64,000 nt of DNA from contig CATNEN010000001.1 of NCBI GenBank assembly GCA_950097015.1, forward strand, positions 10,106,001-10,170,000, in the 5' to 3' direction. Within the stretch, counting starts at the first letter, position 1. Each line of letters begins with the position of its first letter. The notes beneath the pieces were generated by a model. The model saw nothing but the letters and a program-made list of their open reading frames with translations. It had not been told where the DNA came from and searched no databases. Made by a program: the position numbers and the translations under genes. The stretch comes from Macrostomum hystrix. Taxonomy: Eukaryota; Animalia; Platyhelminthes. This document shows positions 27,301 through 46,659 of the stretch, piece after piece.

Positions 27301-29397
27301 GGCGACGTTCAAAGTCGACGCCAACAAAAGTTCGAGCGAGCCGAGCGTGCAGACTGCGGGGCCGGCTCAAAATGCTGCGGCGAATCAGGAGCCGCGAGAT
27401 GAGATCAAGGAGTACCTGTCTGCGCGCTACATTGGCCCAATGGAAGCCGTGAATACCATTTTCGGCTTGGAAGTAATTAATATTTCTATTTTGTTGGTTT
27501 ATGGAAAGCATAGCTGGAAATATTTAGCTCGCATATTACTTATTCGCTACATGAGCAGTTTGCTGAGATTCGTCATGTGAATAGCAATTAAAGATGACAC
27601 CTCATTTTTTTTAACTCCCCCAGGTGCACAACAGGTATCCGCCAGTCATTCGACTGTGCGTGCACAAGTCGGAGGAGCAGCTCGTGTATTTCAACGAGCA
27701 GACTGCGGGCGCCAGAGCAAAGGCACCGAAGGACTCGACGTTGACGGCCTTCTTCAAGCTGTGCCGCACCGACGAGTTTGCGGACGGCTTGTGGACGGCT
27801 CGGGCAGCCTTCACTTCCTGGATGCGCCCGCTGGGACTGGCAAGACCTTCCTGCTGGAGGTTCTGCTGGCCTTCGTGCGCAGTCGGGGTGAGGTGGCCCT
27901 TGCCGTTGCGGCGTCTGGAATCGCAGCGACCCTGCTGCCAGGCGGCCAGACGGCGCATTCCACGTGAGTTGCGATCTGACAGCAGAGTTTGAGTCCTCTG
28001 ATTCCATGCCTTCAGCATACTCACTGAACTCAATAATCCCACCAGATTCAAGATCCCAATTCGAGTGCTTCGCTCCAGCAAGGACGTTTGCTCTGTCGGA
28101 GCGCAGTCGAAGCAAGCCGCGGTGTTTCGGAGTGTCCGTCTAATCGTTTGGGACGAGATCTCCATGACGAACCGGCAAGACCTGGAAGCTGTGGACCGGT
28201 GTCTGCGAGACGTGCGCAAGCAAAATGTGCCATTCGGTGGAGTGGTTCTCGTGCGCGCTGGAGATTTCCGCCAGCTGCTGCCAGTCGTAGTGAACGGGAC
28301 CAGAGCCAACAATGTCCTGGCGTGCGTGAGCAGATCCCCGCTGTGGAAACTGTTCCAGCGGCATCGCTTGACAAAGAACATCCGACTGCAGAGCAGTTCC
28401 GACCCTGCATTGTACCAGAGGTACACGGAACTACTCATGCAGGTGAGTGTATGGTCCCTTGAATTGAATCATTGCTCCTTTAAATACAGCTCTCATTGCG
28501 ATAGTTGTGTCTATGGCATCAAATGCTTCAACCCTCCCAGATCGGATCCGGTAGGATCGAGCAGGATGCGGAGGAGAACGTTTGCCTTCCTGCTGAGATT
28601 CTCATTCCTGCTGAGGGTGCGCTGACTGACCTGATCAAGTTCGTGTACCCATCGTTTGAGGCGTCGGGCGAGAGAGACGGCTACTTTGTGAGCCGAGCCA
28701 TCCTGGCGCCGTACAATGACTCAGTTGATGTGATCAATGAGACGTACCTGGGTATGTTCCCTGGCAGCTTGCGTGAGTACCGATCGATTGACAGTATTGC
28801 TGATGATGATGCCGCAACTCACTTTCCTCCTGAACTGCTCAACCAACTGGATGCCCCAAACTTCCCCAAGCACTTGCTGAGGTTGAAAGTGGGCATGCCG
28901 GTGGTTCTGTTGCGCAATTTGAATCCCCCCCGTTTATGCACGAGGCTGATCGTACTCGCGATGGGCGACAATGTGCTGCGCTGCAGGATTGCCGCCGGCC
29001 AGTTCACGGGAGACGAGATCCTGCTGCCGCGAATCCCGTTGATTCCTAGCAATGCGGACTTGCCAGTCTGCTTTAAGCGGCTGCAGTTTCCGGTGAAGCC
29101 GAGCTTCTGCCTTACAATACACAAAGCACAAAGACAATCCCTCGAGACCGTCGGCGTCGACCTGGCTGTCGGCTGCTTCACGCATGGCCAGCTGTACACG
29201 GCGCTGTCACGAGCGAAGAATGCGGCCAATATCCGAGTCCGAGTGTCGGGGGCCAGGACAAGGAATGTCGTTTTCCCCGAGGTGCTCACTGGCGACTAGC
29301 CGGTTATTGAACCAGTCGTACGTGAGTTCATGACAGTGCTGTTAAGTGTCTGTGATGAATATGATGAATGAATGAATGATAAGTATCTGTGTTTAAT

Positions 29398-31720
29398 CAC
29401 CCGTGTTGACACGGTAGTCAGCCTAAGAAACGATTTCGGAGCATGCACGAGGAGCGCATCATAGGCTACTCGGCGCATGCTCCGTGTTCTAAGAGCATGC
29501 TCTTTCAGTTTAATTAGGCTCGATAGTCCAATTTAATAGGGAGGATCTACGCTACACTGCAGAAATAGACGCTTAGTATTAGTTATATAGCAAGTAGTTA
29601 TATAGCAATTAGCTATATATAAATGTATTTTTAGTAGTAGTATTTTAATTTGTACAGTATTTAAATGTGAGAATCTATTCTAAATGCCAAAAAGACTCTT
29701 GACAATTCAAGATAGAAGAGAAGCTCTCTACTGCATTATTGTAATCCTTTATGATATCTATTTAGTGGTCCAATGGTGCACAATAGAATCGATAATTGGC
29801 TTGAACAAAACTGTCAGTTAGTTAATAAAAAGGCTAGAACTAGTTTAGCTGCATGCCTGTATAGTATTATTTGAACTAAAATTGTATTTCTAGCTGTCTT
29901 AAATGGGCAAGTATTAATATTAGGCCTAATATTAGCTAGGCCTATTAGCTTTCTTTTTGGATTTAGGCCCAATTTAAATTGTTGATGTACCTGATCCCCT
30001 AAATTTATAATTACTTCTATGTATTGACTTGTAAATGAATAATTCAGCTAGCTTACTATCACATACTAGGCTTATAGCTATAGTCAAAGGCTTAAATAAA
30101 TAACCATAAATTATTCCAATGCCATTGCAATGTCTATATGCATAAGTAACCAAGGCTTTTACATATAATTTATTAAATATAAAATCAAATGTCCATAGCT
30201 CTATAATCTATATATACAGTCCATTTCATAAGCTAATATAGCCTGCCTGTCTAAGGCAATAAATAGGCAGGGGCTAGATAGTAGAGCTTGTAGTAGGCTA
30301 GCTGGTAGGGCTAGCTAGTAGGGGCAGGCTGGTAGGGGCTAGATGGTAGAGCTGTTAGGGGATAGCTAGTAGGGGCTAGATAGTAGAGCTGTTAGGGGAT
30401 AACTGGTAGTGGCTAGCATAGGCCTAGATAATAGAGTTAGGGGATAGCATAGTTGGTAAGGCTAGCTAGTAGGGGCAGGCTGGTAGGGGCTAGATGGTAG
30501 AGCTGTTAGGGGATAACTGGTAGTGGCTAGCATAGGCCTAGATAATAGAGTTAGGGAATAGCATAGTTGGTAGGGATAGCTAGTAGGGGCTAGATGGTAG
30601 AGCTGTTAGGGGATAGCTGGTAGCAGCTAGCATAGGCCTAGATAATAGAGTTAGGGGATAGCTGGTAGGGCTAGCTAGTAGGGGCAGGCTGGTAGGGGCT
30701 AGATGGTAGAGCTGTTAGGGGATAACTGGTAGCCTAGGGGCTAGATAGTAGAGCTGTTAGGGGATAGCTAGTAGGGGCTAGATAGTAGATCTGTTAGGGG
30801 ATAACTGGTAGTGGCTAGCATAGGCCTAGATAATAGAGTTAGGGGATAGCATAGTTGGTAAGGCTAGCTAGTAGGGGCAGGCTGGTAGGGGCTAGATGGT
30901 AGAGCTGTTAGGGGATAGCTGGTAGCAGCTAGCATAGGCCTAGATAATAGAGTTAGGGGATAGCTGGTAGGGCTAGCTAGTAGGGGCAGGCTGGTAGGGG
31001 CTAGATGGTAGAGCTGTTAGGGGATAACTGGTAGCCTAGGGGCTAGATAGTAGAGCTGTTAGGGGATAGCTAGTAGGGGCTAGATAGTAGAGCTGTTAGG
31101 GGATAACTGGTAGTGGCTAGCATAGGCCTAGATAATAGAGTTAGGGGATAGCATAGTTGGTAAGGCTAGCTAGTAGGGGCAGGCTGGTAGGGGCTAGATG
31201 GTAGAGCTGTTAGGGGATAACTGGTAGTGGCTAGCATAGGCCTAGATAATAGAGTTAGGGAATAGCATAGTTGGTAGGGCTAGCTAGTAGGGGCTAGATG
31301 GTAGAGCTGTTAGGGGATAGCTGGTAGCAGCTAGCATAGGCCTAGATAATAGAGTTAGGGGATAACTGGTAGGGCTAGCTAGCCAGTAGGGGCAGGCTGG
31401 TAGGGGCTAGATGGTAGAGCTGTTAGGGGATAACTGGTAGCCTAGGGGCTAGATAGTAGAGCTGTTAGGGGATAGCTAGTAGGGGCTAGATAGTAGAGCT
31501 GTTAGGGGATAACTGGTAGTGGCTAGCATAGGCCTAGATAATAGAGTTAGGGGATAGCATAGTTGGTAGGGCTAGCTAGTAGGGGCTAGATGGTAGAGCT
31601 GTTAGGGGATAACTGGTAGTGGCTAGCATAGGCCTAGATAATAGAGTTAGGGGATAGCTGGTAGGGCTAGCTAGTAGGGGCAGGCTGGTAGGGGCTAGAT
31701 GGTAGAGCTGTTAGGGGATA
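29398..31720 (+). repeat. Left TIR (unique ~870 bp, then TAG-rich satellite)
   Basis: Reverse complement of 43673-45995; rare array variants align at a constant coordinate sum of 75393 (AGATCT 30787/44606; AGCCAGTAG 31381/44012). Confidence 0.95.
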
Positions 31721-32430
31721 ACTGGTAGCCTAGGGGCTAGATAGTAGAGCTGTTAGGGGATAGCTAGTAGGGGCTAGATAGTAGAGCTGTTAGGGGATAA
31801 CTGGTAGTGGCTAGCATAGGCCTAGATAATAGAGTTAGGGGATAGCATAGTTGGTAAGGCTAGCTAGTAGGGGCAGGCTGGTAGGGGCTAGATGGTAGAG
31901 CTGTTAGGGGATAACTGGTAGTGGCTAGCATAGGCCTAGATAATAGAGTTAGGGAATAGCATAGTTGGTAGGGCTAGCTAGTAGGGGCTAGATGGTAGAG
32001 CTGTTAGGGGATAGCTGGTAGCAGCTAGCATAGGCCTAGATAATAGAGTTAGGGGATAGCTGGTAGGGCTAGCTAGTAGGGGCAGGCTGGTTGAGCTGGT
32101 TGGGCTGGTGCGGGCTAGCTTGTAGGGCTGGTATGGGCTAGCTTGTAGGGCTGGTGCGGGCTAGCTTGTAGGGCTGGTGCGGGCTAGCTTGTAGGGCTGG
32201 TGCGGGCTAGCTTGTAGGGCTGGTGCGGGCTAGCTTGTAGGGCTGGTGCGGGCTAGCTTGTAGGGCTGGTGCGGGCTAGCTTGTAGGGCTGGTGCGGGCT
32301 AGCTTGTAGGGCTGGTAGGGGCTAGCTTGTAGGGCTGGATGGTTGCTAGGACGGGGCTAGATAATAGAGCGGTTAGGAGATAGCTGGTAGGGCTAGCTGG
32401 TAGTGCTAGCTGGTGGCGCTAGCTGTTTCT
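30265..32430 (+). repeat. Complex G-rich TAG/TTAGGGG satellite, then 23-bp GGGCTGGTGCGGGCTAGCTTGTA tandem
   Basis: Directly visible. Confidence 0.95.
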
Positions 32431-32602
32431 GGCTGGATATGGGATACGGGAATGTGGAGGCAGGAGTAATTTAGTTCCTTACATTACCAATTACTATTAC
32501 TTACTAATTATTAAATACTATAAAATGATTTCGATAGTAATATTGATTGTCTATTTGAACGTTTATTTACATCACTTTACACTGCTTTTCAGATTAATTG
32601 CA

Positions 32603-35600
32603 ATGTCAAAAAAATATCTAGTCAGTACCAGTAAGGAAGTCATATTTCATGCGCCAAAGCGAAGAAAAGTTCGTGAAAAAATCGAACATCCTGCAGTAAA
32701 AAGGTTTGTTTTGAGTCTTAGAAATTTCGTGTTTTTACATTTTTCATCTCGAAGAGATGTAAACTCTTTTATTTCGTTATCAAATATTTAGTTTATCAAA
32801 ACACAGGATTTAGTCGAATGAGTAATTTTTAAATGAATTTATCTGTTGTGCTCATCTTACTACTCTTGACTAAAATAATGTATTGTTTAGAATTCAATTG
32901 AATAAAGTAATTTAATTCCTCCACAATTTTAGCGATATTGACATGAAGTCAATAAATGCACCCACGCCTAGTGCTATCGAGGAAGGCGACGATTTTGAAC
33001 CAGAAGAATTCTTAGAAGTTTTTGAGATTCCCCAGATATTCATATAAAAACTTTTTATATGGAATTTGTGGTAATTTTTAATAGCTTAGTTTAGTTTTAG
33101 TCTTGCTAATTTGCTGTAAACTTGGCAAATGCAGTATAGGCTTGTACTGTATAGATAGCCCAAAAATCGGATAGCGTTTTAAGGCTTGTTTCTTTTGCAG
33201 AACAAAAACGAAACTTGTCAGCCTTGATCTGAAATCTTTGCATGCGATTTTTTCTCAGCAAGAACCTTTGCAATGTGTAAAGTTTTTTGTTTATTAAGCT
33301 TCTTCGACGCAATTTTAGTTTTCTGACTGTTACTGGCGTCACTGTTGCGGCTGTTGGCAGTGACCACATCGATGAAAATGTGGATCATGATGACTATGAG
33401 CCACCTGCAGAAGAGGCCGATGGTGGGCCAAGTCGATATGACACTCGGCGTGAGCTTGAGGAGGACGGCTGGAAAAGTCTAGCCACAGAGCTGGCAGATG
33501 GATTTGCCTCGTTTTTTCGAAATGAAGTAAATAACCTGTGCTCGCTTTGTAAAGCTTTGGTTGGAGAGTTTAGGTGCGAGAGCTGTCACCTACTACAAGT
33601 GTGTGAGCACTGTCTCAATATCGCTCACTCACACAGTCCACCCCATGTTGTGAAGATATGGGATGTAAGTTCTGTGCTGTTTTGCTGTTTTTTATATTTA
33701 GCGTTTTCATAATGTCACGTTACTGATTTCTCGGCACGTTATATAAAGCTAGCGTATCCCTAAGTCAAACTTAAGGATTGCATTTTACAGAGCCGAGATT
33801 GCAATTAAGATCAAACTTGCACTTCAAGCTTAATAATGCGACCCATCCTTTATTTCGATTTCTTCATGTTCTTTTCAGGGTACAACTTACATGGTGGTCT
33901 CGACGCCAATACTTTTGGTTCGAAGAACCACTTGTGTCTGCGATGATATCAGCACGCAAGTTGTGACTGCATTAACAGATGAAGGTAAAGTGACAGTTGA
34001 TGTCAGATAGACAATTAGGCCATTTTTAAGTATTTGTTAACGCTATTCTTAAGACTTCTGTCTAAATATTGATGCCCTTGCCAACATTGTAGGTCAATTG
34101 ACCCTGCAAGTGGAGTCTTGCTCGTGCTTAACATTGCGGAACACGCTACTGTCGCATGGCTTCTGGCCGACGCAACCTCTGACCGAAACTGTCAAGGAGG
34201 TTATCGCTGTCCACATCAACTTGTTGCTGTTCTTCGATTGCGTATCATCAAGTTGTACAGCATCGTTATCATCACTCTGTGCTGCATGGAAAAATTGCAG
34301 AAGCTCCGCTTGGCTATCTCCGCCAACGAAGGTAACTGAAGGCTCGAGCAGATCTAGCTATCGTAAATAAAACTGAAACTTCCTTCTGTACAAAAATTAG
34401 CCGTCTTTATTCCATTTTTGCTGTAACGATTGCGCAGATCAATCTTTTTCGTACATTGAACACCACTGGAAGCTTTCGAGCATTTCGGCGACTTTTGCAA
34501 GACATTCGGTGGGGACAGAAGACATCGTGTCCAGCATGTTTTTTTGTAAGTTGGTAATGCATTTCGTCAGTGACGTGAAACTATTTCTGCCATCTTAAGC
34601 TCAAAGCAAGTGTTCGTACATCGGCTTTCAAGCGTAAATAAGTTATTTTGATTCCTTTAATGATTAGGATCCCACTCCGAGCACTCGAAGTGAAAGCTCG
34701 CAAGGACCCAATCCCGATGATAACACGCTGATGCCCGAAACTCAAGTCTCGACACCGACTTTTCTTATGCTGGACGGCTGCTTCGGCATAAGACATCGAA
34801 AACGTGCTGGAAAAGCGGCGATTCCGCTTGCGTCCGGTTTTTTCGTCGATGTCGATTTCAGCAGACCAGCTGGGCAAAACCGAAATCACTGCCCTAATTG
34901 GACAGCCGGTGGTCGGGGCAAAGGGCTCGTTACTGCATCCGACAAAAACAAACTCGATGTTTTTGGCCTTTTCTGTGGCTCCTGCCGCCATTCTAGCGTA
35001 ACATATCTGGCCGACATCGTTACACCAGGAGAAAGGTGCGCCTTGCCACAGAGAAATCTGTGTACCTTTTATACATGTTGCAGCTACGAACGTATTTAAG
35101 CTCATTCGTTATGTATCATTACTAAGCTTTTGCGCCCTGCCTAACTCTATAATTTTAAGGTCTAAACTTGTAGCCTGGCGACTGTATACTCAAAATTAAT
35201 AATCCGAATATCTTGCCCGGTATGCACGAATATCTTGTACAGTCCTCCTTTCTGATTTCATCTTTTATTTCTTCTTTTTCTTCCTTTCTTTTCGTTTTTT
35301 TCTCTTCAGAAAAAATAATAATTAATATGTTAGTATTAATTAAAATAAGAATACATAGTTAATAATGCCTGCACAAACTGGGCCAGATGTGCAGCTAACA
35401 GCGCAGCCGCATCTGAAGGCTGCGTAGGGCTGTTTAGTCCACGGAATTAAGGACCACCACACCCACCTTCAATTACCCCAGCTAATGCTGGTACCGATTT
35501 TACAGCTGGATGAACTGAAGCAGGGCAGAATTAAATGGCTTGCTAAAGGAAACAACTTGTACCGGTGGAGTCGGGAATCGAACCCCCGACCTTCAAGTCG

Positions 35601-37261
35601 TGAGTCCGACGCTCTAACCACTAGTCTACAACCCCTTCTTAAAAATAATACTTAGTTAATTTTAACTCATTAAAAACTAATTACAATGTAGTTGAAAACC
35701 TGCCTCAATTTAGGCTCGCGTATTCCCAAGCAATGGTATCGAAAGCGTTGGCAGACATTCCGAGCCATCAGAAATTGGTCGTGTCGTACGACATCAGCTG
35801 CAAGCTGGCCAGTCATTTCAATGATGACAGGCTGTCCTTCGCCATTCCGGCTTTCCATGCATACGGTCACAAGGAAAGCTGCCATACGAAATTCGGAATT
35901 CGATCCGTAAATGGCGCAGGTTTGACTGACGGTGAGAGCTGTGAGCGCATATGGTCTTCTGCTAGACGCTTTGGTCCGCAAGTGAAAGAAATGACTCATC
36001 CAAATCGCCGCGAGTTCCTGAACTACTGGGCGGATTCGGTCAACTTCGAGAAAATTCGAACTATTAGTGAGTCATTTACTTACAGTTTTTTATTGCAAGG
36101 AAGTGAACTTTATATTTTCCGAAGCAAGATGTTTACTTTAAAATTACTTAGGCTCCTGGTTGTTTGGACGACGGCTTGTTGAGAAGCGAGCTTGGCAGCG
36201 TTTCAATTCTGATGTTCGACAGTTTTGCGTTTTGACCGAAATGAACTGTGGGTTATTAGTATACGTTTTTATGTAATAATTAAAAATTTTAAAACCAATT
36301 AGATATAAATTTGCGTAATTGAAGTTCATAATTAAAGCAAAGGCGCAATTTAATCAAAGCACAACCTTGAAATATGACTTAAAAGCCTCGGGCTTTCTGA
36401 CCGCACTTTACTAATTAGAATACGTTATTAATCTGACAAAATTAATCCCTGTTATTTAATTTTTAGGTGACGTTGAAACCTTCCTAGCGTTGGCCAAAGT
36501 CTGGGAAAATGAACTTATCGAGCAATCTGTTAAGGAGAATGCCAGGACGGACCACACAGACCAGACGATTCTCGAACTTCAAGAGTTGGCTTGCGAGCGA
36601 GAATTTTTAATTTGTCGGGCAGCTAGAGAAAGTGGTCAAAAGCTCAATCGAGTCCTTAACAAACGACTCAGCAAAATATCTGCAAGGGCTAATGTACTTC
36701 TTGAACGGTACAACGCAAGTTGTCCGCCAGGCTGTACTTTGAATTTCAACAGCATTCTGGCAACTGATAATGGTGACACTTCAATGGTGGATATCGCAAG
36801 GAAACGTCAAGCAGTTAAGTTGCTGCAGCTTCAAAGAAGAATCGAAGAGGAATCTTCTTTGGTTCAAGAGGAGGTTCGGCGGGCATCTCGCTTTTTTGTT
36901 GATGCACTCCTGCGCACGAGATCAGAAGTTGAGATCAATGCTCATCGTCCCCTGCTGACTTTAAGAGTTCTCAGGGCCAATGGAATTGAACAACTTTTAA
37001 AACAGCATATCAGTATTTTCCCGTCGGAAGATATCTTCACTCGATTTCTCTCAGCGGCCTGTAAGCTTTGTGGTATAGTTTCGGTTTTATAATTTAGGTT
37101 ACTTTTAAGATCACAGAATATATATAGCGAATTCTTAACACTTAGGTAACGCTGGAGCAGTGCCACCCGATGAGGTGGATCTGATCGACCAAGAAGCTGA
37201 GATTACCGAGTCTTCCGATGATGAAGAAGATACCGAGACCTCTGATGCCGAGGATGATTAA
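32603..37261 (+). CDS. KDZ transposase with N-terminal Cys-cluster (CxC) domain, >=11 exons
   Basis: FRCESC..C..C...H...H...W, GFWPTQP, CPAC, MLDGCF, CRH, SYDISC, FHAYGHKESC, GLTDGESCERIWS. In-frame GT-AG exons ~33361-33664, 33879-33984, 34093-34331, 34438-34545, 34668-35035, 35713-36066, ~36152-36248, 36467-37060, 37146-37261. First two exons uncertain. Confidence 0.9.
35360..35635 (-). mobile_element. tRNA-derived CORE-like SINE in a transposase intron
   Basis: GGGGTTGTAGACTAGTGGTTAGAGCG...GGTTCGATTCC head, then CCTTTAGCAAG...CTTCAGTTCATCCAGCTGTAAAA core. Confidence 0.8.
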
Positions 37262-40200
37262 GAATCATGATATTCTGAAATCAGATATTATTTTTTAAAA
37301 CTTTGTTAAGCTTCTGATCCTTTAGCCCGGTCTTGAACGTATAACATTTTAAAACTCTGCTACACCCAGTTTTTTTGTTTTCCCACTCGATTGAAGGCAT
37401 TATGTTATTATAAATACATTTTATTTTTAAATAAACTCAACATCCTGTAAAAGCTAACCTATTATAAAAATTATTGAACAGAGCTGCCAAGAAAAAATTC
37501 TAGTTTATACGCTGAAAGCGAAATTATTTAATGTTTTACATTAATATTTAAAATTAACATCAAGCCGAGATTTAATGTCTTCCGTATTATGTCTTCTATT
37601 ATCAAAAGAGGATAACTAATCGCTTGTGTGCTTTCTACGCATGCATGTATCTATGTCGAGTGAGGAGAGCTGGCTACCGCTTTTTTAATTTTGCATTTGC
37701 GCAGTACGAGCAGCATAATCTCGTATAATCTTCGAGACAGTCTATGACAATCATTTAAAAGCTGCAAGTTTCTGAAATGTTAACGACAAACGTCACGAAG
37801 TACATGGTATTAATTGTCCTGCTGCAAGAAGCAACTAATACCAATACACGGTTTTAATTAGCAGCAGTATTAGCGCACTCAAAAAGAGTCGCTGATTTTC
37901 TGTTCTTAAGAAAGGGACAAAATATATAACAAGTATATATATATATAACTCATATAACTCACTATACGATTATAGTGAGTTTATTTATTTGTGCGATGAA
38001 ATATAGAAAATATGAAAGTTAGGAATGATTAAAATCAACCACTCAGTACAATAATATTCACTTGCTCAAGTTGCGTGTATAGTGAAACTAGTGAAACGTA
38101 AAACTTTATCTGCAATACATGATCTAATCCATGTATCAAGAAATATACGAGTACAAAGATTCGGGTCTGGAAAATCAGAGGAAAGTTAAGAAATATCGGA
38201 TGTTTTTATAAATGAGGAAGAAAAAATGTTAAGAGCGCAGTCACCCTGTAAGCCATGCTTCCAGCAATTAGCTGCTCTTTTTTAAACAAGGTTTTAATCG
38301 CTTGGCAACAGTCTCATCAAGTAGCCGCGGGTCCCACTTTCTTTTTTTCCCACTACTATCTGAATCGTATTGTCCACTTGATAGAAATTACAATTACAAA
38401 TACCAACTCTGCAGCTAACGTTATGCTAGTCTCCAAGTGAAGTTGATCGTGCTAATTTTTTAATTACTCTGTCTGTCATTTCGACATCTCCATACCTGCA
38501 AGTCTGTTCAAACTTATGTGGGAAAATCATAAATTTTCCGAGCTAGGATGCAGGCTAATTAATTATGAAATTTCGAATTTTAAGATCGTTCAACACCATA
38601 AAAAGTGTCAGTTCCATTAGCTTAGTCAATCGTAACGAGACAATTAAGCTAACATGCGCAGAGAGAGAAGCTAGGGGTGCAAAGTGCAGAAACACTACTT
38701 TATGGATACATTACTGGACACGCGATCGCGCGTACACTGTGACACGGCAACAGTGGCTGCAACTCTAAAAAACCGAAATGTCTGAATTCTTTGCGTATTT
38801 GACGATAAACGTAAATGTGTACGTTCATAAAGACAACGCAAGGCAATACACGTTTTTGTTAAGATGATATGGAGTACATGTAAACGTTCCACTGCATGCT
38901 CACTGTGCATGTACGACTTATTCAGAGGTTTCGCGCCAAATATACGCTTACGCATGCCTGCATTCTGTGATCATCGCGTAAAAATCCGCGAACAAAATCT
39001 CTGCCAGCAAAGTTTGGCTAGCAAAAACCTCACTAGCCAATATTCCTGCTAGCAAAATTCGGCTAGCATTTTCCTGCTAGCAAAGTCATAGACCCTTCAT
39101 CCAAGCGCCCAATGTAATCCTAACGTATACTATTATAGGAATAGTTAGGGACTGCACATGCACGAGAACGCATGCATTGAAGCACACCATTAATGGATAA
39201 GAAGTGCGCTGACTGTTTCCCATCGGACACACTCTACCTTGGGTAGTGCCCACTGCATGTCTAGTGCTGCATCCCTAAGAATCCCCTATGCAAAAGTCCT
39301 CTCTTGCTGACCAATCTATTCCCTGAGAATCCCTACTATCTTCGGCCATACTACCTAAAGTACTTCTCTGAACAGAGCGACAGCCGCGTTTCGGTAGGGC
39401 CAGTCAATTGTAGTGTCCTGTAGGTGGCTGGTGGCAGCCCTGCCTAGCAGTTCTTACCTCTCACAACCCTGGTCCCTGGGATCTTGGCCACTCAGGCACA
39501 CCAACAGGTACCATACATCAGAGGTGGAGTAGATCGATTAGGAGCAGTTCAGTACAATGCACGTGTCCTGTCAGACACGGTCGTTCGAGAATATATACTG
39601 AATGTACTAAATACTGAATTTCACTGTCTCGTCAGCCGGCACATCACACGTGCGGGCGTACGCAAATGATTCTTTGTCATGATGCGTACGTGTGGTCTGG
39701 GCGTGGGTCAGTGTCTACTTTTTTCGACCCGAACTGACCCAGGGTCAAGCCACCTATAATTCCCCGCTGAATCGCCTCTCCTTTCCTGGCTGCGCCTACC
39801 GCCCGTCTGACCTGCGATTCGCACCTCTCACTCGACTCGCCCTCTCCTATTTCCCTCCCCTGTTTTGCATATTTTGGCTTTAGTAAATTAAGCTAGCAAT
39901 TAGACCCCTCCGGGTCCGTAAACACCTTTCATAGGAAGGGGTAAAAAATATCACCCCGTTAGCAGACAGCAGACTAATCCATCTGTTTCGTGTCAAATCC
40001 AGCGCTGAGCACGCTCCCGAGGGCCAATGAGATAGAGAGGGCAGCGGCGCTGACATTGACCTGTCAGCCATCTTGGATCCGGCGCTCTCTGTAATGGCGC
40101 GCCTAAAATCTTAAGAAGCTCAGAAGATTACGCTAAGGCGTCGTTGCCGAGTCGTTTGATACGCCGCCTTTTTTGCGACCATGAGTTTCAGCATCCAACA

Positions 40201-41016
40201 GCAACGACACAACACTCATGCAGCCATAGACACAGTAGCCGCGAGTTTCAATTAGGCCATTGCCATGAACTCTGGCTTTCCATGAGCATCATTGCATCAT
40301 TGCTTGAAATTGCCAGCTTCATTCTGCAGTCGTTTACCCGACTCCGAGGCAAACTCAATCGCAATCCCAATCAAGGTAGATACAATCGCAAGTTCAGGCC
40401 GAATGCACCTTGCCATTTGAGACGAAATGAAGCACCAAAGTAATAAATACGCTCGTAACATTGAAAATTACGACCCTTCAAATGTGCTAGAATCGCAAAA
40501 CATGCGTACAATACTTATTGTATTTAATGAAGTGGCGCGAGGCTACGTATGCACTTTGTTGCTTTTTAAGTCATTTTTGGCAAAAAATATTTAATCGAAC
40601 AGAATTACGCTCGTAACTTTGTATTAAAAAAGCTGTGAAACTTTCATTTATGATAAAAAGTAAAATAAACGGTATCACTGGTTTTAGCAGCCGTTTAAGC
40701 AATTGAGACATAGCAATCTGCATCATCAAAGAAAAATGCAAATTTGAGCAAAATAAATGTTTTAATTCAGTTAAATGCACAACACAGGAAAAAAATATTT
40801 TTTTCGCGCGCTTGTATGCTGGAGATTGTATTTAATACAATATGCTTTATCCGTGATAAGTTTCCATCATAGCTAATTCGAGATTGCACATAATGTTCCG
40901 TTTTAAGTTTGCCGGAACTGGCCGTCGAGGCTTCAACAATCACCTGGTGGACATCTCTCAGTCTTAGCGGGCTGGCTGATTACCGCTTGGTTTGAGCAAA
41001 ATTGATGAGTCATAAG

Positions 41017-43202
41017 TCATAACTGAAACAGATCACGGACTGCATTGTTGGTTCCGACGACTCGAACAATTTGACTCGCCACAGAGGTGGCACAGGTGGC
41101 TTGCCCGTTGATAACTCGAATGATTCGAATGCCGCTGCTCTGGTCAGCGATGCTCTGACCGGCGATGCTCTGGCCAGCGATGCTCTGACCGGCGATGCTC
41201 TGGCCAGCGATGCTCTGACCGGCGATGCTCTGGCCAGCGATGCTCTGACCGACGATGCTCTGACCAGCGATGCTCTGACCGACGATGCTCTGGTCAGCGA
41301 TGCTCTGACCGACGATGCTCTGGTCTGCAGCAACCTGGCCGTTTGAGATACGCGATAAATCCTCGACAATGGGGCTAATAGAGAAGCAAATGGTATCTCT
41401 ATTAGCCCACAATGTGTTTAGATGTTCCGCCTTAAGCATTTTTGGTGGTTGGTCTGCTGGCACCCCAGCTGGCCAGTGAAGCCAATTCTTGCAGTACTTC
41501 TTATACTGCAACCGACCAGAGCCACCAGCAGCAACTAAAAATTGGTGATTAGAAGAGAAACGCCAGTGGTATCAGAAGCAATTGTTATTATAATCCTTAA
41601 TCCTTAATCCTTAATGTAAGGCTATTTGTTTCAGGACAGTTTGGAGTTGGAGAAGCTAGAGAAGCTAGCGCTTTAATCGAAAATAGCGGTAAGCATGAGC
41701 AACTAACTAAAATAAACCGTTGAATGCAATAAAAAAATTGAATGCCAGACGACGCTTAAAGGATCTACTGAATTGAATTGCAAGCCTACAAGATTGCCAA
41801 ATATTTAAACAAGTTCGTTAATTTGGTCAAAAGGTCCGTTTACTTAACAGAAATATACTCACAGAATTTTTGCACCAAAAACTTTCCAACTTTCCGACGG
41901 AGATCAGCGACGGACTGTTTTCTAGTGTGGCTGCTCTCCTCAGACATTAGCTACGAGTGCAATAGACAGAATTAAATTGCAGTGAATTTGAATTTTGTGA
42001 TAATAAAGTTTTAACAAAAATATAATCAAGATCCGAGCTAACCCTGTTGCTTACATTGTGCAGGCCGGATTTTTTTACGCTTCCAAAAACATTCGTCGTT
42101 TCGAAGACGTGAAAGTCACCGCTCGGCAGGCCAAGGCAAATAGCCACAGAAACATTAGCAGTCTCACAAGTTTGCATCTGCAACAAAAAAACGAAAAAAT
42201 AACCTCTTTGGCAGAGATTAAGGTGACAGGTATAGAGCTAATACCCGACAAAATTTTGCCTGCTGCGTACTAATTTTTCGGCATATGCTTTAATTCGCGC
42301 GGAACTTTTCTCGGCAGTACACTGCAGATTCCTTAAAGCAACTTCCCTACGTAGATCAGCTAGCTGTGTCTTGCTCAAGGCGCGGAAAGCCTTTCGGAGC
42401 GCTTGAATTCGAACTAAAATTGTTTTTTTAATGGAAGTGTTTAAATGTGAGCGAAATGTAAAGGCCTCCAGGTGCTTCGAAATTTACATTTGCCGATTAC
42501 CTAAAATTTTGTCTAGGCACAGGGTGGCATTTTGTACGAGCGTACACTATTGGTATTTCAATACTTAATATATAAACAGCGATGCACGTTTGCAGAGTGT
42601 AAAGTATGAAGTCCGCTCGAGAGTAGTTTAGTGTGGTGCGAAGAATCGTAAGGCCCCAGCTGGCCAAGCTTGCGACTTTTTATTTGAGCAAACCGTGGGG
42701 TGGTGCAACTATCGATTGGCATATCGATGTACATATCGCAGGCAGATAATTGGTTGGGCCAATGCACGCGATATGAACATCGATATGCCAATCGATAGTT
42801 GCACCACCCCACGGTTTGCTAAAATAAAAAGTCGCAAGCTTGGCCAGCTGGGGCCTTACGATTCTTCGCACCACACTAAACTACTCTCGAGCGGACTTCA
42901 TACTTTACACAGAGCATGAGCAATTGAGTTTGGGCGCCAGTGCACAAGAACGGTCTACAAAATAACTGCATAAAAAGTTGAAACAAATTTAAGCAAATAC
43001 CAACCAGCAAATGATCCTGACATAAGCTTATAGCGCCTGGAAACAAAAATGTTCCAAGCCGATGCCTTTCGCCAGCGCATATTTGCTGAAAGAAGCGTAA
43101 AAGTACAACGAATGAATTTATAAATACACAAATAGATCTAGACGTAAAAAAACTATTTTCACTCCAGCGATCTGCCACATCCCGTGTTCTTGCCAAACCC
43201 AT
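41017..43202 (-). CDS. Six-exon 330-aa gene with HMG-box-like N-terminus and QSIAG repeats; second gene of the KDZ element
   Basis: Exons 43202-43163, 43085-43005, 42413-42271, 42177-42055, 41950-41863, 41534-41017 join in frame. Motifs RKASAWNIFVSRRYK...LRKAFRALSKTQLADLRR and WLHWPAGVP. Confidence 0.75.
41140..41325. repeat. 15-bp coding minisatellite (QSIAG/QSIVG)
   Basis: GCGATGCTCTGACCG-type units, about 12 copies. Confidence 0.95.
42598..42909. mobile_element. Palindromic MITE, TGT...ACA ends, 5-bp TSD (Ginger-like)
   Basis: ~140-bp near-perfect arms; TSD CAGAG at 42593-42597 and 42910-42914; lies in intron 2 of the HMG-like gene. Confidence 0.85.
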
Positions 43203-43672
43203 TTATGTTCCCACTAGCTTAGGTTAGGTTCATAGGTTCATAGTTAGGTTCATACTTAGGTTCATAGCATCTCTTGCCATATTTCAGTTAGCCCCTGACA
43301 GCTAGAGCAAGCCCCTGCCAGCAAGCTCTACCTGCTAGACCCTACCAGCTAACCTTTTCAGTAGCCCTTATGAGCTACCAGCCCTACCAGCTTGCCCCTA
43401 CTAGCCAGCACATACTGCTAGCACCTACCAGCCTGCCCCAACAAGCCCTACCATCTAGCCCCAACCAGCCTGCCAGCTAGCCCCAACCCCAACCTGCCCT
43501 GCCAGCCCTACAAGCTAGCTCCAACCAACCCCACTAGCTTGCCTCTACCAGCCCCTATCAGCTAGCCCCTACTAGCTAGCCTTACCAGCTATCCCCTAAC
43601 AGCTCTATTATCTTTTCTAGCCCCTACCAGCTAGCCTCAAACTCTATTATTTTTTTTCTAGCCCCTACCAGC

Positions 43673-45995
43673 TATCCCCTAACAGCTCTACCATCTAGCC
43701 CCTACCAGCCTGCCCCTACTAGCTAGCCCTACCAGCTATCCCCTAACTCTATTATCTAGGCCTATGCTAGCCACTACCAGTTATCCCCTAACAGCTCTAC
43801 CATCTAGCCCCTACTAGCTAGCCCTACCAACTATGCTATCCCCTAACTCTATTATCTAGGCCTATGCTAGCCACTACCAGTTATCCCCTAACAGCTCTAC
43901 TATCTAGCCCCTACTAGCTATCCCCTAACAGCTCTACTATCTAGCCCCTAGGCTACCAGTTATCCCCTAACAGCTCTACCATCTAGCCCCTACCAGCCTG
44001 CCCCTACTGGCTAGCTAGCCCTACCAGTTATCCCCTAACTCTATTATCTAGGCCTATGCTAGCTGCTACCAGCTATCCCCTAACAGCTCTACCATCTAGC
44101 CCCTACTAGCTAGCCCTACCAACTATGCTATTCCCTAACTCTATTATCTAGGCCTATGCTAGCCACTACCAGTTATCCCCTAACAGCTCTACCATCTAGC
44201 CCCTACCAGCCTGCCCCTACTAGCTAGCCTTACCAGCTATGCTATCCCCTAACTCTATTATCTAGGCCTATGCTAGCCACTACCAGTTATCCCCTAACAG
44301 CTCTACTATCTAGCCCCTACTAGCTATCCCCTAACAGCTCTACTATCTAGCCCCTAGGCTACCAGTTATCCCCTAACAGCTCTACCATCTAGCCCCTACC
44401 AGCCTGCCCCTACTAGCTAGCCCTACCAGCTATCCCCTAACTCTATTATCTAGGCCTATGCTAGCTGCTACCAGCTATCCCCTAACAGCTCTACCATCTA
44501 GCCCCTACCAGCCTGCCCCTACTAGCTAGCCTTACCAACTATGCTATCCCCTAACTCTATTATCTAGGCCTATGCTAGCCACTACCAGTTATCCCCTAAC
44601 AGATCTACTATCTAGCCCCTACTAGCTATCCCCTAACAGCTCTACTATCTAGCCCCTAGGCTACCAGTTATCCCCTAACAGCTCTACCATCTAGCCCCTA
44701 CCAGCCTGCCCCTACTAGCTAGCCCTACCAGCTATCCCCTAACTCTATTATCTAGGCCTATGCTAGCTGCTACCAGCTATCCCCTAACAGCTCTACCATC
44801 TAGCCCCTACTAGCTATCCCTACCAACTATGCTATTCCCTAACTCTATTATCTAGGCCTATGCTAGCCACTACCAGTTATCCCCTAACAGCTCTACCATC
44901 TAGCCCCTACCAGCCTGCCCCTACTAGCTAGCCTTACCAACTATGCTATCCCCTAACTCTATTATCTAGGCCTATGCTAGCCACTACCAGTTATCCCCTA
45001 ACAGCTCTACTATCTAGCCCCTACTAGCTATCCCCTAACAGCTCTACCATCTAGCCCCTACCAGCCTGCCCCTACTAGCTAGCCCTACCAGCTAGCCTAC
45101 TACAAGCTCTACTATCTAGCCCCTGCCTATTTATTGCCTTAGACAGGCAGGCTATATTAGCTTATGAAATGGACTGTATATATAGATTATAGAGCTATGG
45201 ACATTTGATTTTATATTTAATAAATTATATGTAAAAGCCTTGGTTACTTATGCATATAGACATTGCAATGGCATTGGAATAATTTATGGTTATTTATTTA
45301 AGCCTTTGACTATAGCTATAAGCCTAGTATGTGATAGTAAGCTAGCTGAATTATTCATTTACAAGTCAATACATAGAAGTAATTATAAATTTAGGGGATC
45401 AGGTACATCAACAATTTAAATTGGGCCTAAATCCAAAAAGAAAGCTAATAGGCCTAGCTAATATTAGGCCTAATATTAATACTTGCCCATTTAAGACAGC
45501 TAGAAATACAATTTTAGTTCAAATAATACTATACAGGCATGCAGCTAAACTAGTTCTAGCCTTTTTATTAACTAACTGACAGTTTTGTTCAAGCCAATTA
45601 TCGATTCTATTGTGCACCATTGGACCACTAAATAGATATCATAAAGGATTACAATAATGCAGTAGAGAGCTTCTCTTCTATCTTGAATTGTCAAGAGTCT
45701 TTTTGGCATTTAGAATAGATTCTCACATTTAAATACTGTACAAATTAAAATACTACTACTAAAAATACATTTATATATAGCTAATTGCTATATAACTACT
45801 TGCTATATAACTAATACTAAGCGTCTATTTCTGCAGTGTAGCGTAGATCCTCCCTATTAAATTGGACTATCGAGCCTAATTAAACTGAAAGAGCATGCTC
45901 TTAGAACACGGAGCATGCGCCGAGTAGCCTATGATGCGCTCCTCGTGCATGCTCCGAAATCGTTTCTTAGGCTGACTACCGTGTCAACACGGGTG
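43673..45995 (-). repeat. Right TIR of the KDZ element
   Basis: Reverse complement of 29398-31720. Confidence 0.95.
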
Positions 45996-46104
45996 GTTTA
46001 ATAGTGATCACAAGTAGTTTATCCTGATATGTAAGTGGCCCGATGAGACATATCAGGCAAATCCTGCCGTATTCGCCTAATGAATTCAAATTAGATGGGA
46101 TCAA

Positions 46105-46482
46105 AACGGGATCATCGCATAACTAGATTGGGATCATTGCATAACTAAATTGGGATCATCGCATAACTAGATTGGGATCACTGCATAACTAAATTGGGAT
46201 CATTGCATAACTAAATTGCGATCATCGCATAACTAGATTGGGATCATTGCATAACTAAATTGGGATCATTGCATAACTAAATTGGGATCATTGCATAACT
46301 ACTTGTAAATTGGGGTCATTGCATAACTAAATTGGGATCATTGCATAACTACATTGGGATCATTGCATAACTAAATTGGGGTCATTGCATAACTAAATTG
46401 GGATCATTGCATAACTAAATTCGGATTATCGCATAACGAAAGTGGGCTCATTGCATAACTAAATTGGGATTATCGCATAACG
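46105..46482. repeat. 22-bp satellite GGGATCATTGCATAACTAAATT
   Basis: About 17 tandem units. Confidence 0.95.
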
Positions 46483-46659
46483 AAAGTGAGAACATATTGC
46501 CAAAGTTGAGTGCGATTGATTTTTGTAATGCCTGAAATGACATCACAAGTAGTGCTTGACGGTGAAGATGGTGAATATACACCACTATTGGCCCGCGAAG
46601 ACGTCAAGTGAAACCCTGTTGCAGTGACATTGAAGTACTTTTCAGGGGTTCCGAAATTT

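Follow-up and report, generated by a model that had tools for sequence, protein, structure and literature searches.

Few eukaryotic DNA transposons are as large or as poorly understood as the KDZ elements, whose mobility has been shown mainly in fungi and algae. We analyzed a stretch of 64,000 nucleotides from the flatworm Macrostomum hystrix (contig CATNEN010000001.1 of assembly GCA_950097015.1, positions 10,106,001 to 10,170,000 of the forward strand; hereafter the window), in which positions 29398-45995 are a real, young and complete 16.6-kb cut-and-paste transposon of the KDZ class. The Kyakuja elements of Agaricomycete fungi combine a KDZ transposase with a 7-bp target-site duplication (TSD) and CA..TG termini, lack terminal inverted repeats (TIRs) and often carry a TET/JBP gene (Kojima, 2025, PMC12730594). 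The Cryptococcus elements KDZ1-3 of the Dileera clade are 9-11 kb long, encode a CxC1+KDZ transposase along with extra genes of unknown function, and are experimentally mobile; their TIRs measure 139-241 bp and their TSDs 8 bp, with 4-8 bp reported for KDZ2/3 (PMC11343200, PMC12810828). Dileera elements have 8-bp duplications. KDZ elements are already known in animals, namely as Zisupton in fish and other animals and in diplogastrid nematodes. As summarized in later papers, Zisupton has an 8-bp TSD and a protein of about 1,300-1,400 amino acids (aa) with CxC4 and SWIM domains (Bohne, 2012, as cited in PMC12730594, PMC9297572).

The window element resembles Kyakuja in its KDZ transposase, its 7-bp TSD and its CA..TG termini, but differs in having 2,331-bp TIRs with tandem arrays, a second gene whose product is probably GTF2I-like, an animal host and no TET/JBP gene. 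Set beside Cryptococcus KDZ1-3 by description, it is likewise large, with a KDZ region and a CxC1-like one, extra coding capacity in the form of an additional gene, and TIRs; in contrast, the arms in the window family are 2.2-3.4 kb long and the TSD is strictly 7 bp in five out of five copies. With Zisupton it shares a multi-exon transposase gene of the KDZ class in an animal, whereas its TSD is 7 bp long, its cysteine cluster is CxC1-like, no SWIM match was found on any open frame of the gene, and the predicted protein has only about 780 aa. An earlier reading of the same DNA, made without database searches (the sequence-only reading), had considered the TSD length to be novel. Since Kyakuja has been published with a 7-bp TSD and CA..TG ends (PMC12730594), this length is not new for KDZ elements. 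The literature searched yielded no KDZ element that has kilobase TIRs bearing oriented arrays, no KDZ element accompanied by a GTF2I-like accessory gene and no description of one from Macrostomum; of the combination that had been held to be undescribed, the long arrayed arms and the accessory gene thus appear to be so, but the TSD length does not. The window element belongs to the known KDZ class, as a distinctive variant, and is not a new kind of element.

Two further systems bear comparison. En/Spm (CACTA) elements have CAC termini, subterminal repeats and a 3-bp TSD, and encode a transposase and the DNA-binding protein TnpA by one alternatively spliced transcript. The likeness to the window element, consisting of CAC ends, subterminal motifs at both ends and a second element-encoded protein (DNA-binding in En/Spm), is a functional analogy only, as En/Spm has another transposase family, a 3-bp duplication and both proteins from a single transcript. 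Foldback and Galileo of Drosophila have very long inverted arms that consist largely of tandem subrepeats, and the Galileo enzyme is P-type. The ends of the window element had been called Foldback/Galileo-like, which is apt for the arm architecture but implies no kinship: the transposases are unrelated, the window enzyme being a KDZ protein.

The element is 16,598 bp long, with termini CACCCGTG...CACGGGTG. Its left end reads CACCCGTGTTGACACGG... and its right end ...CCGTGTCAACACGGGTG, the exact complement of the left, and reading both ends confirmed that they start with CAC. The arms are complementary over 2,331 bp in an ungapped comparison, with two mismatches (arm positions 1760 and 2324); the sequence-only reading was right about their length and near-identity in substance, but had put them at about 2.32 kb with a single mismatch seen by eye. 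In a gapped alignment, the similarity of the arms reaches about 2,440 bp. The heptamer GTTTAAT, already noticed on both sides in that reading, is duplicated over exactly 7 bp, with a different eighth base; the chance of a single 7-bp match is about 6e-5. In each arm, about 870 bp of unique sequence precede the tandem arrays, whose periods are 14, 23, 37, 114, 302, and 402 bp. The TAGGGG motif occurs 65 times per arm, always in the same orientation relative to the end, and once or twice in the 11-kb interior, so that the arrays, judged by motif count, are restricted to the arms. The ends of the element are organized as follows:

29391-29397, no strand: left 7-bp TSD (GTTTAAT), identical to 45996-46002; at least eight paralogous loci have the flanks of this copy side by side.
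29398-31728, plus strand: left inverted arm, 2,331 bp, two mismatches relative to the right arm; about 870 bp unique, the rest arrays.
29398-29527, plus strand: conserved terminal module with CACCCGTGTTGAC, three NNCATGNN palindromic motifs and AATTAGGCT.
30272-32338, plus strand: left subterminal tandem arrays with 65 TAGGGG, extending beyond the perfect arm.
43424-45124, minus strand: right subterminal tandem arrays in CCCCTA orientation, the mirror image of those on the left.
43665-45995, minus strand: right inverted arm.
45996-46002, no strand: right 7-bp TSD (GTTTAAT), matching the left copy.

The insertion site is itself an older interspersed repeat (window positions 29100-29397 and 45996-46110), of which the genome contains at least 20 copies with 73-93% identity. 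A 22-bp tandem array at 46108-46485 lies to the right of this repeat.

Genome searches covered an assembly of 220,453,370 bases in 42 contigs. The first 600 bp of the element gave ten matches at 99-100% identity, which form five inward-facing pairs on contigs C1 (three pairs), C8, and C41; an eleventh match of 159 bp at C41 derives from a duplicated end in copy B. The five copies span 16.6, 18.1, 19.4, 21.1, and 9.3 kb, and each is flanked by a perfect 7-bp TSD of its own (GTTTAAT, AAAATTT, AAATTTT, GTTTAAA, and GCTATGC), with an eighth base that never matches. The genome-wide comparison of termini and TSD lengths thus gave the same 7 bp in all five cases. Between copies, the 860 bp of unique end sequence show 0-2 nt differences, besides a 1-bp indel at one end and the duplicated end at C41. 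Two other full-length copies lie on C8 and at C1:18.6 Mb, and their interiors share 99.6-99.9% identity with that of the window copy. Copy D (C1:11087269-11108352) keeps the transposase gene and diverges past window position 39138, where it continues with about 2 kb of other sequence and a displaced 199-bp piece. Copy B (C41:2834816-2844103) is a rearranged 9.3-kb deletion derivative without the accessory gene, in which the 5' half of the transposase gene is internally inverted and the terminal 159 bp are duplicated. Arm length varies between 2.2 and 3.4 kb among the copies because the arrays vary. The predicted exons are gap-free in copies A, C, D, and E.

Long, near-perfect inverted repeats that contain tandem arrays are well known to give rise to chimeras in long-read data, and the arms or even the whole element might therefore be an artefact of the assembly, for instance a foldback chimera or a repeat that was collapsed. 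However, the two-armed structure recurs at five loci on three contigs, each time with its own 7-bp duplication, and sister family G (see below) is built alike. In addition, the flanks adjoin without an insert in paralogous loci: at least eight other loci contain left- and right-flank matches on the same strand and 66-67 bp apart, compared to an expected gap of 85 bp, the difference falling in a (TGAA)n microsatellite. These empty loci presumably have a single GTTTAAT. Finally, the assembly was built from PacBio data, polished and purged of haplotigs (PMC10468722). We reject the artefact because there are five independent copies, and regard its probability as negligible.

Two convergent spliced genes lie between the arms, as the sequence-only reading had proposed, with Pfam matches on the KDZ exons of the first and four GT-AG junctions in transcript contigs of the second. 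All domain searches were run on single exons or open frames. In the first gene, on the plus strand, the Pfam KDZ profile (PF18758) matches the frame 34668-35096 with positions 3-103 (27.2 bits with a cut-off of 26.6, E 3.7e-6) and the frame 35649-36179 with positions 102-215 (91 bits, E 1.1e-25), two exons thereby covering positions 3-215 of the 217 in the profile. The CxC1 profile (PF18802) matches the frame 34053-34367 with positions 30-97 (E 2.3e-5) at 24.9 bits, just below the cut-off of 26.9 bits; the remainder of the CxC1 domain would lie on the preceding exon. The protein had been read as a CxC-KDZ transposase. This identification holds for the KDZ part, by Pfam on two exons; the CxC1 part gave a match slightly under the cut-off. 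CxC4 and SWIM gave no match on any open frame of the gene with E up to 1-10 at the exon level. An Atlas search, in which 27 out of the 30 nearest clusters were KDZ, agrees with Pfam on the superfamily and does not resolve the sub-clade, and a length-limited homologue search returned one 173-aa protein.

When the window element was compared in translation to three relatives elsewhere in this genome, only the coding blocks proved to be conserved; the KDZ exon has 75% identity to the window element in family F and 71% in family G/H. Predicted GT-AG introns in compatible frames link all conserved blocks, giving a predicted transposase of about 780-790 codons with an acidic C-terminal tail that is also found in family G. 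The protein contains the motifs LDGCF, YDISC, and DGESCERIWS, which we take to be the acidic triad of the transposase. The features of the gene are listed below.

33242-33276, plus strand: candidate first coding exon, from ATG 33242 to a GTAAGT donor at 33277, followed by a 42-nt intron; proposed from frame arithmetic.
33319-33664, plus strand: predicted exon with a cysteine/histidine cluster (CSLC..CESC..CEHC..HSH) and no in-frame ATG, conserved in families F and G.
33879-33984, plus strand: predicted transposase exon.
34093-34331, plus strand: transposase exon with the CxC1 cysteine cluster (PF18802 match just under the cut-off, predicted splice sites).
34438-34545, plus strand: predicted transposase exon with 67% amino-acid identity to families F and G.
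34668-35035, plus strand: transposase exon with the N-terminal KDZ half (profile 3-103; PF18758) and LDGCF.
35714-36066, plus strand: transposase exon with the C-terminal KDZ half (102-215; PF18758), YDISC and DGESCERIWS; donor at 36067 or 36085.
36152-36247, plus strand: predicted transposase exon.
36467-37060, plus strand: predicted transposase exon, helical C-terminal region.
37146-37261, plus strand: predicted last transposase exon with the acidic tail and TAA at 37259-37261.
37262-37497, plus strand: transposase 3' untranslated region; transcript contigs terminate at 37488, with a poly(A) loose end after 37497.

The contig ends at 37488 and the poly(A) loose end after 37497 indicate that the transposase gene is expressed. 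At the other end of the gene, ATG 33242 together with the 42-nt intron would make a frame-consistent start. A start on an AUG supplied by the spliced leader was also considered, the acceptor at 33298 being in frame here; it was not adopted because the clearest acceptor in family F is out of frame.

The long intron of the transposase gene contains an insert (35428-35652) that has 75% identity to sequence flanking a different KDZ locus (F coordinates 747-872) and resembles a short interspersed repeat. A tRNA-derived origin was rejected, as ARAGORN finds no tRNA in it.

The second gene, here called the accessory gene, lies on the minus strand. In transcript contigs it has five exons and four introns, all of them GT-AG. 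Introns 41535-41862, 41951-42054, and 42178-42270 are spliced in contigs from two organism A runs and one organism B run, and intron 42414-43004 is supported by one run. The coding exons (43080-43005, 42413-42271, 42177-42055, 41950-41863, and 41534-41020) add up to 945 nt in one frame, i.e., 315 codons followed by TGA, which replaces the 330 aa given by the sequence-only reading. In one contig of run X2, position 43086 is joined to the terminal 23-24 nt of the spliced leader known from Macrostomum (CGGTCTCTTACTGCGAAGACTCAATTTATTGCATG; sequence from PMC8629364).

41017-41534, minus strand: accessory exon 5, with the GTF2I-like core at 41344-41532, an in-frame repeat stretch and TGA at 41017-41019.
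41136-41323, minus strand: 15/30-bp tandem repeat in exon 5, encoding (GQSIA)n.
41863-41950, minus strand: accessory exon 4 (junctions 41534/41863 and 41950/42055).
42055-42177, minus strand: accessory exon 3, 49% identical to family G (transcript contigs).
42271-42413, minus strand: accessory exon 2, with a helical stretch earlier read as HMG-like (transcript contigs).
43005-43086, minus strand: accessory exon 1 (junction 42413/43005), with ATG at 43080-43078 and the spliced leader beyond 43086 at AG 43087-43086.

Three observations concern this gene. The (GQSIA)n repeat differs in length and sequence among otherwise near-identical copies and looks like a fast-evolving linker. Intron 1 contains, at 42597-42910, a small foldback element with 148-bp arms, an 18-bp spacer, ends TGTAAAG...CTTTACA and CAGAG flanks, which is also present inside unrelated transcript contigs. 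Lastly, in the comparison of the runs X2 (organism B) and X9 (organism C), 68% of the sampled words are present in a run that carries another organism's label; its leader-capped spliced transcripts show one difference in 1,662 nt, and one contig shows a deletion form joining 39332 to 43129. Such near-identical transcripts under another organism label could stem from a close relative, from carry-over between libraries or from a recent horizontal transfer between Macrostomum species.

For the identity of the accessory protein, a profile of the exon-5 core of families A, F, and G was searched against 1.84 billion proteins and matched a 303-aa protein, P0003, with E 9e-6. This protein matches Pfam GTF2I (PF02946) with 37.4 bits (cut-off 27) and contains four similar repeats in its sequence; hhalign places the segment WPAGVP...ICF on the same part of the P0003 repeat with 83% probability. 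The family G exon matches the Pfam GTF2I profile directly but weakly (E 0.22, profile positions 43-74). Four other matches of the profile search were set aside: P0001 looks repetitive, as does P0002, which like P0005 has unrelated Pfam domains, and P0004 has no Pfam match. We grade the support for a GTF2I-like link as moderate, and the accessory protein more probably than not carries a GTF2I-like repeat. Several results pull the other way. The link is indirect, as the accessory exons of the window copy have no direct Pfam GTF2I match; the AlphaFold2 model of the exon-5 core is poor (mean predicted local distance difference test score 62.5), and a Foldseek search with it against PDB gave no match. 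The exon-5 profile likewise found nothing among PDB sequences, and a word-indexed homologue search with the exon-5 frame returned nothing.

The sequence-only reading had instead taken the second protein for HMG-like, in which case an HMG box would bend DNA at the element ends. By eye, RKASAWNIFV in exon 1 (RRPSAWNVF in family F, RKASKWNVFI in family G) together with the helical exon 2 does resemble the start of an HMG box. However, no accessory exon or open frame matches Pfam HMG_box with E up to 10, the exon-2 profile finds no HMG chain among PDB sequences, the Atlas feature search returns nothing HMG-like, and a genome-wide search detects no paralogue of exon 2 beyond its own family. By pairwise tblastn, exon 2 aligns to family G at 38% identity. 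The same intron splits this region in all three families, and the negative results apply to single exons. An HMG-box protein is thus an unlikely alternative to the GTF2I-like protein, GTF2I being the one domain to which a link emerged; an HMG box in addition to a GTF2I-like repeat appears equally doubtful.

The two-gene organization is not confined to the window family. The family G element is 14.8 kb long, with TIRs of 1,441 bp at 97.8% identity and a 7-bp TSD (GCGTGCT), and encodes the same two genes in the same order. It shares the first ten bases of its end (CACCCGTGTT) and has a different array motif (GGAGCTTCAGGGCAGG). All five accessory exons are present in family G in the same order, with 35-58% identity. 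At least seven KDZ families, with KDZ exons that share 50-71% identity with that of the window element, have an exon-5 homologue at a distance of 7-8 kb from the KDZ exon and convergent with it. Because exon-5 homologues accompany KDZ in so many families, we consider the two-gene layout to be old and conserved.

An abundant 433-bp foldback-like miniature inverted-repeat transposable element (MITE) is related to the window element, being about 72% identical to it over its first 123 bp. It has the ends CACCCGTGTTGAC and CAGCCGTGTTGAC, with the terminal sequences CACCCGTGTTGACAG... and ...GTCAACACGGCTG, and occurs at more than 40 places in the genome (L012-L030, e.g., L030:1501-1933). Perfect 7-bp TSDs (tacagtt, agctggc, and atatatt) flank three out of six copies read. 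An end alignment of family A, family G and the MITE shows conservation of CACCCGTGTT, the three NNCATGNN palindromes and AATTAGGCT within 130 bp. The MITE has probably been moved by a KDZ transposase of this group. Genome-wide, there are at least 61 matches to the KDZ-domain exon, distributed over many families, and KDZ elements are a major and diverse share of the DNA transposons of Macrostomum hystrix. Some multi-copy KDZ groups, with 36-39% identity and open frames of 235-382 aa, have no accessory-gene homologue nearby.

Taken together, the window element is very probably an autonomous-looking member of a young cut-and-paste family of the KDZ superfamily. A rival reading is that the family no longer moves: its copies would derive from a single recent burst or from segmental duplication, and its genes would be transcribed relics. 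There are only five copies, two of which (B and D) are rearranged or truncated, and no transposition event, insertion polymorphism or excision footprint has been observed. The transposase gene itself adds to the doubt: its start codon is only a candidate, no ATG being present in the first conserved exon of families A and F and a single internal Met in that of family G, and its splice sites are predictions. On the other hand, the different flanks and the private target duplication of each copy exclude a segmental duplication, the unique part of the ends is almost invariant, the exons are open and gap-free in four copies, and both genes are expressed and processed. An immobile family is therefore improbable in our view, and the well-preserved KDZ family is probably still mobile. 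The earlier description of a recently mobile animal KDZ family agrees with the near-identical ends and separate 7-bp TSDs of the five copies.

By analogy and from sequence, the following mechanism may be proposed. The transposase would recognize the terminal module of about 130 bp, with CACCCGTGTTGAC and the three NNCATGNN palindromes; this module may be what the transposase needs, the arrays being an accessory feature. It would cut at the CAC/GTG ends and integrate with 7-bp staggered cuts, for which the duplications provide indirect support. The 315-aa accessory protein would bind element DNA through its GTF2I-like repeat, most plausibly at the oriented, family-specific subterminal arrays with their 65 TAGGGG per arm, which are the likeliest binding target. 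Such binding would help to pair or to mark the ends, a role like that of TnpA on the En/Spm subterminal repeats, and the 433-bp derivatives, which have the terminal module only, would be mobilized in trans. The array motifs of family G are different, which is a difficulty for this scheme as any pairing between arrays and protein would have to co-evolve. A bolder proposal, in which the flatworm elements are an old and undescribed two-component KDZ lineage whose GTF2I-like protein serves as its own end-binding factor, reading the family-specific subterminal arrays and co-evolving with them, is speculative and on present evidence rather unlikely.

One flatworm, of a genus kept in the laboratory, thus provides several full-length, near-identical copies with clean ends and a 7-bp TSD, matching MITEs and an expressed second gene, which makes it a practical system for studying end recognition by KDZ transposases and the role of an accessory protein. 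The 7-bp duplication is extended from fungal Kyakuja to an animal KDZ lineage with long TIRs. For genome annotation, masking should treat both genes as part of a transposon, and the 433-bp derivatives belong in the same class. If the two-component lineage proves true, the GTF2I-like repeat, best known from vertebrate TFII-I, would have a transposon-borne form in invertebrates, and an origin or spread of the GTF2I-like domain by mobile elements would become testable.

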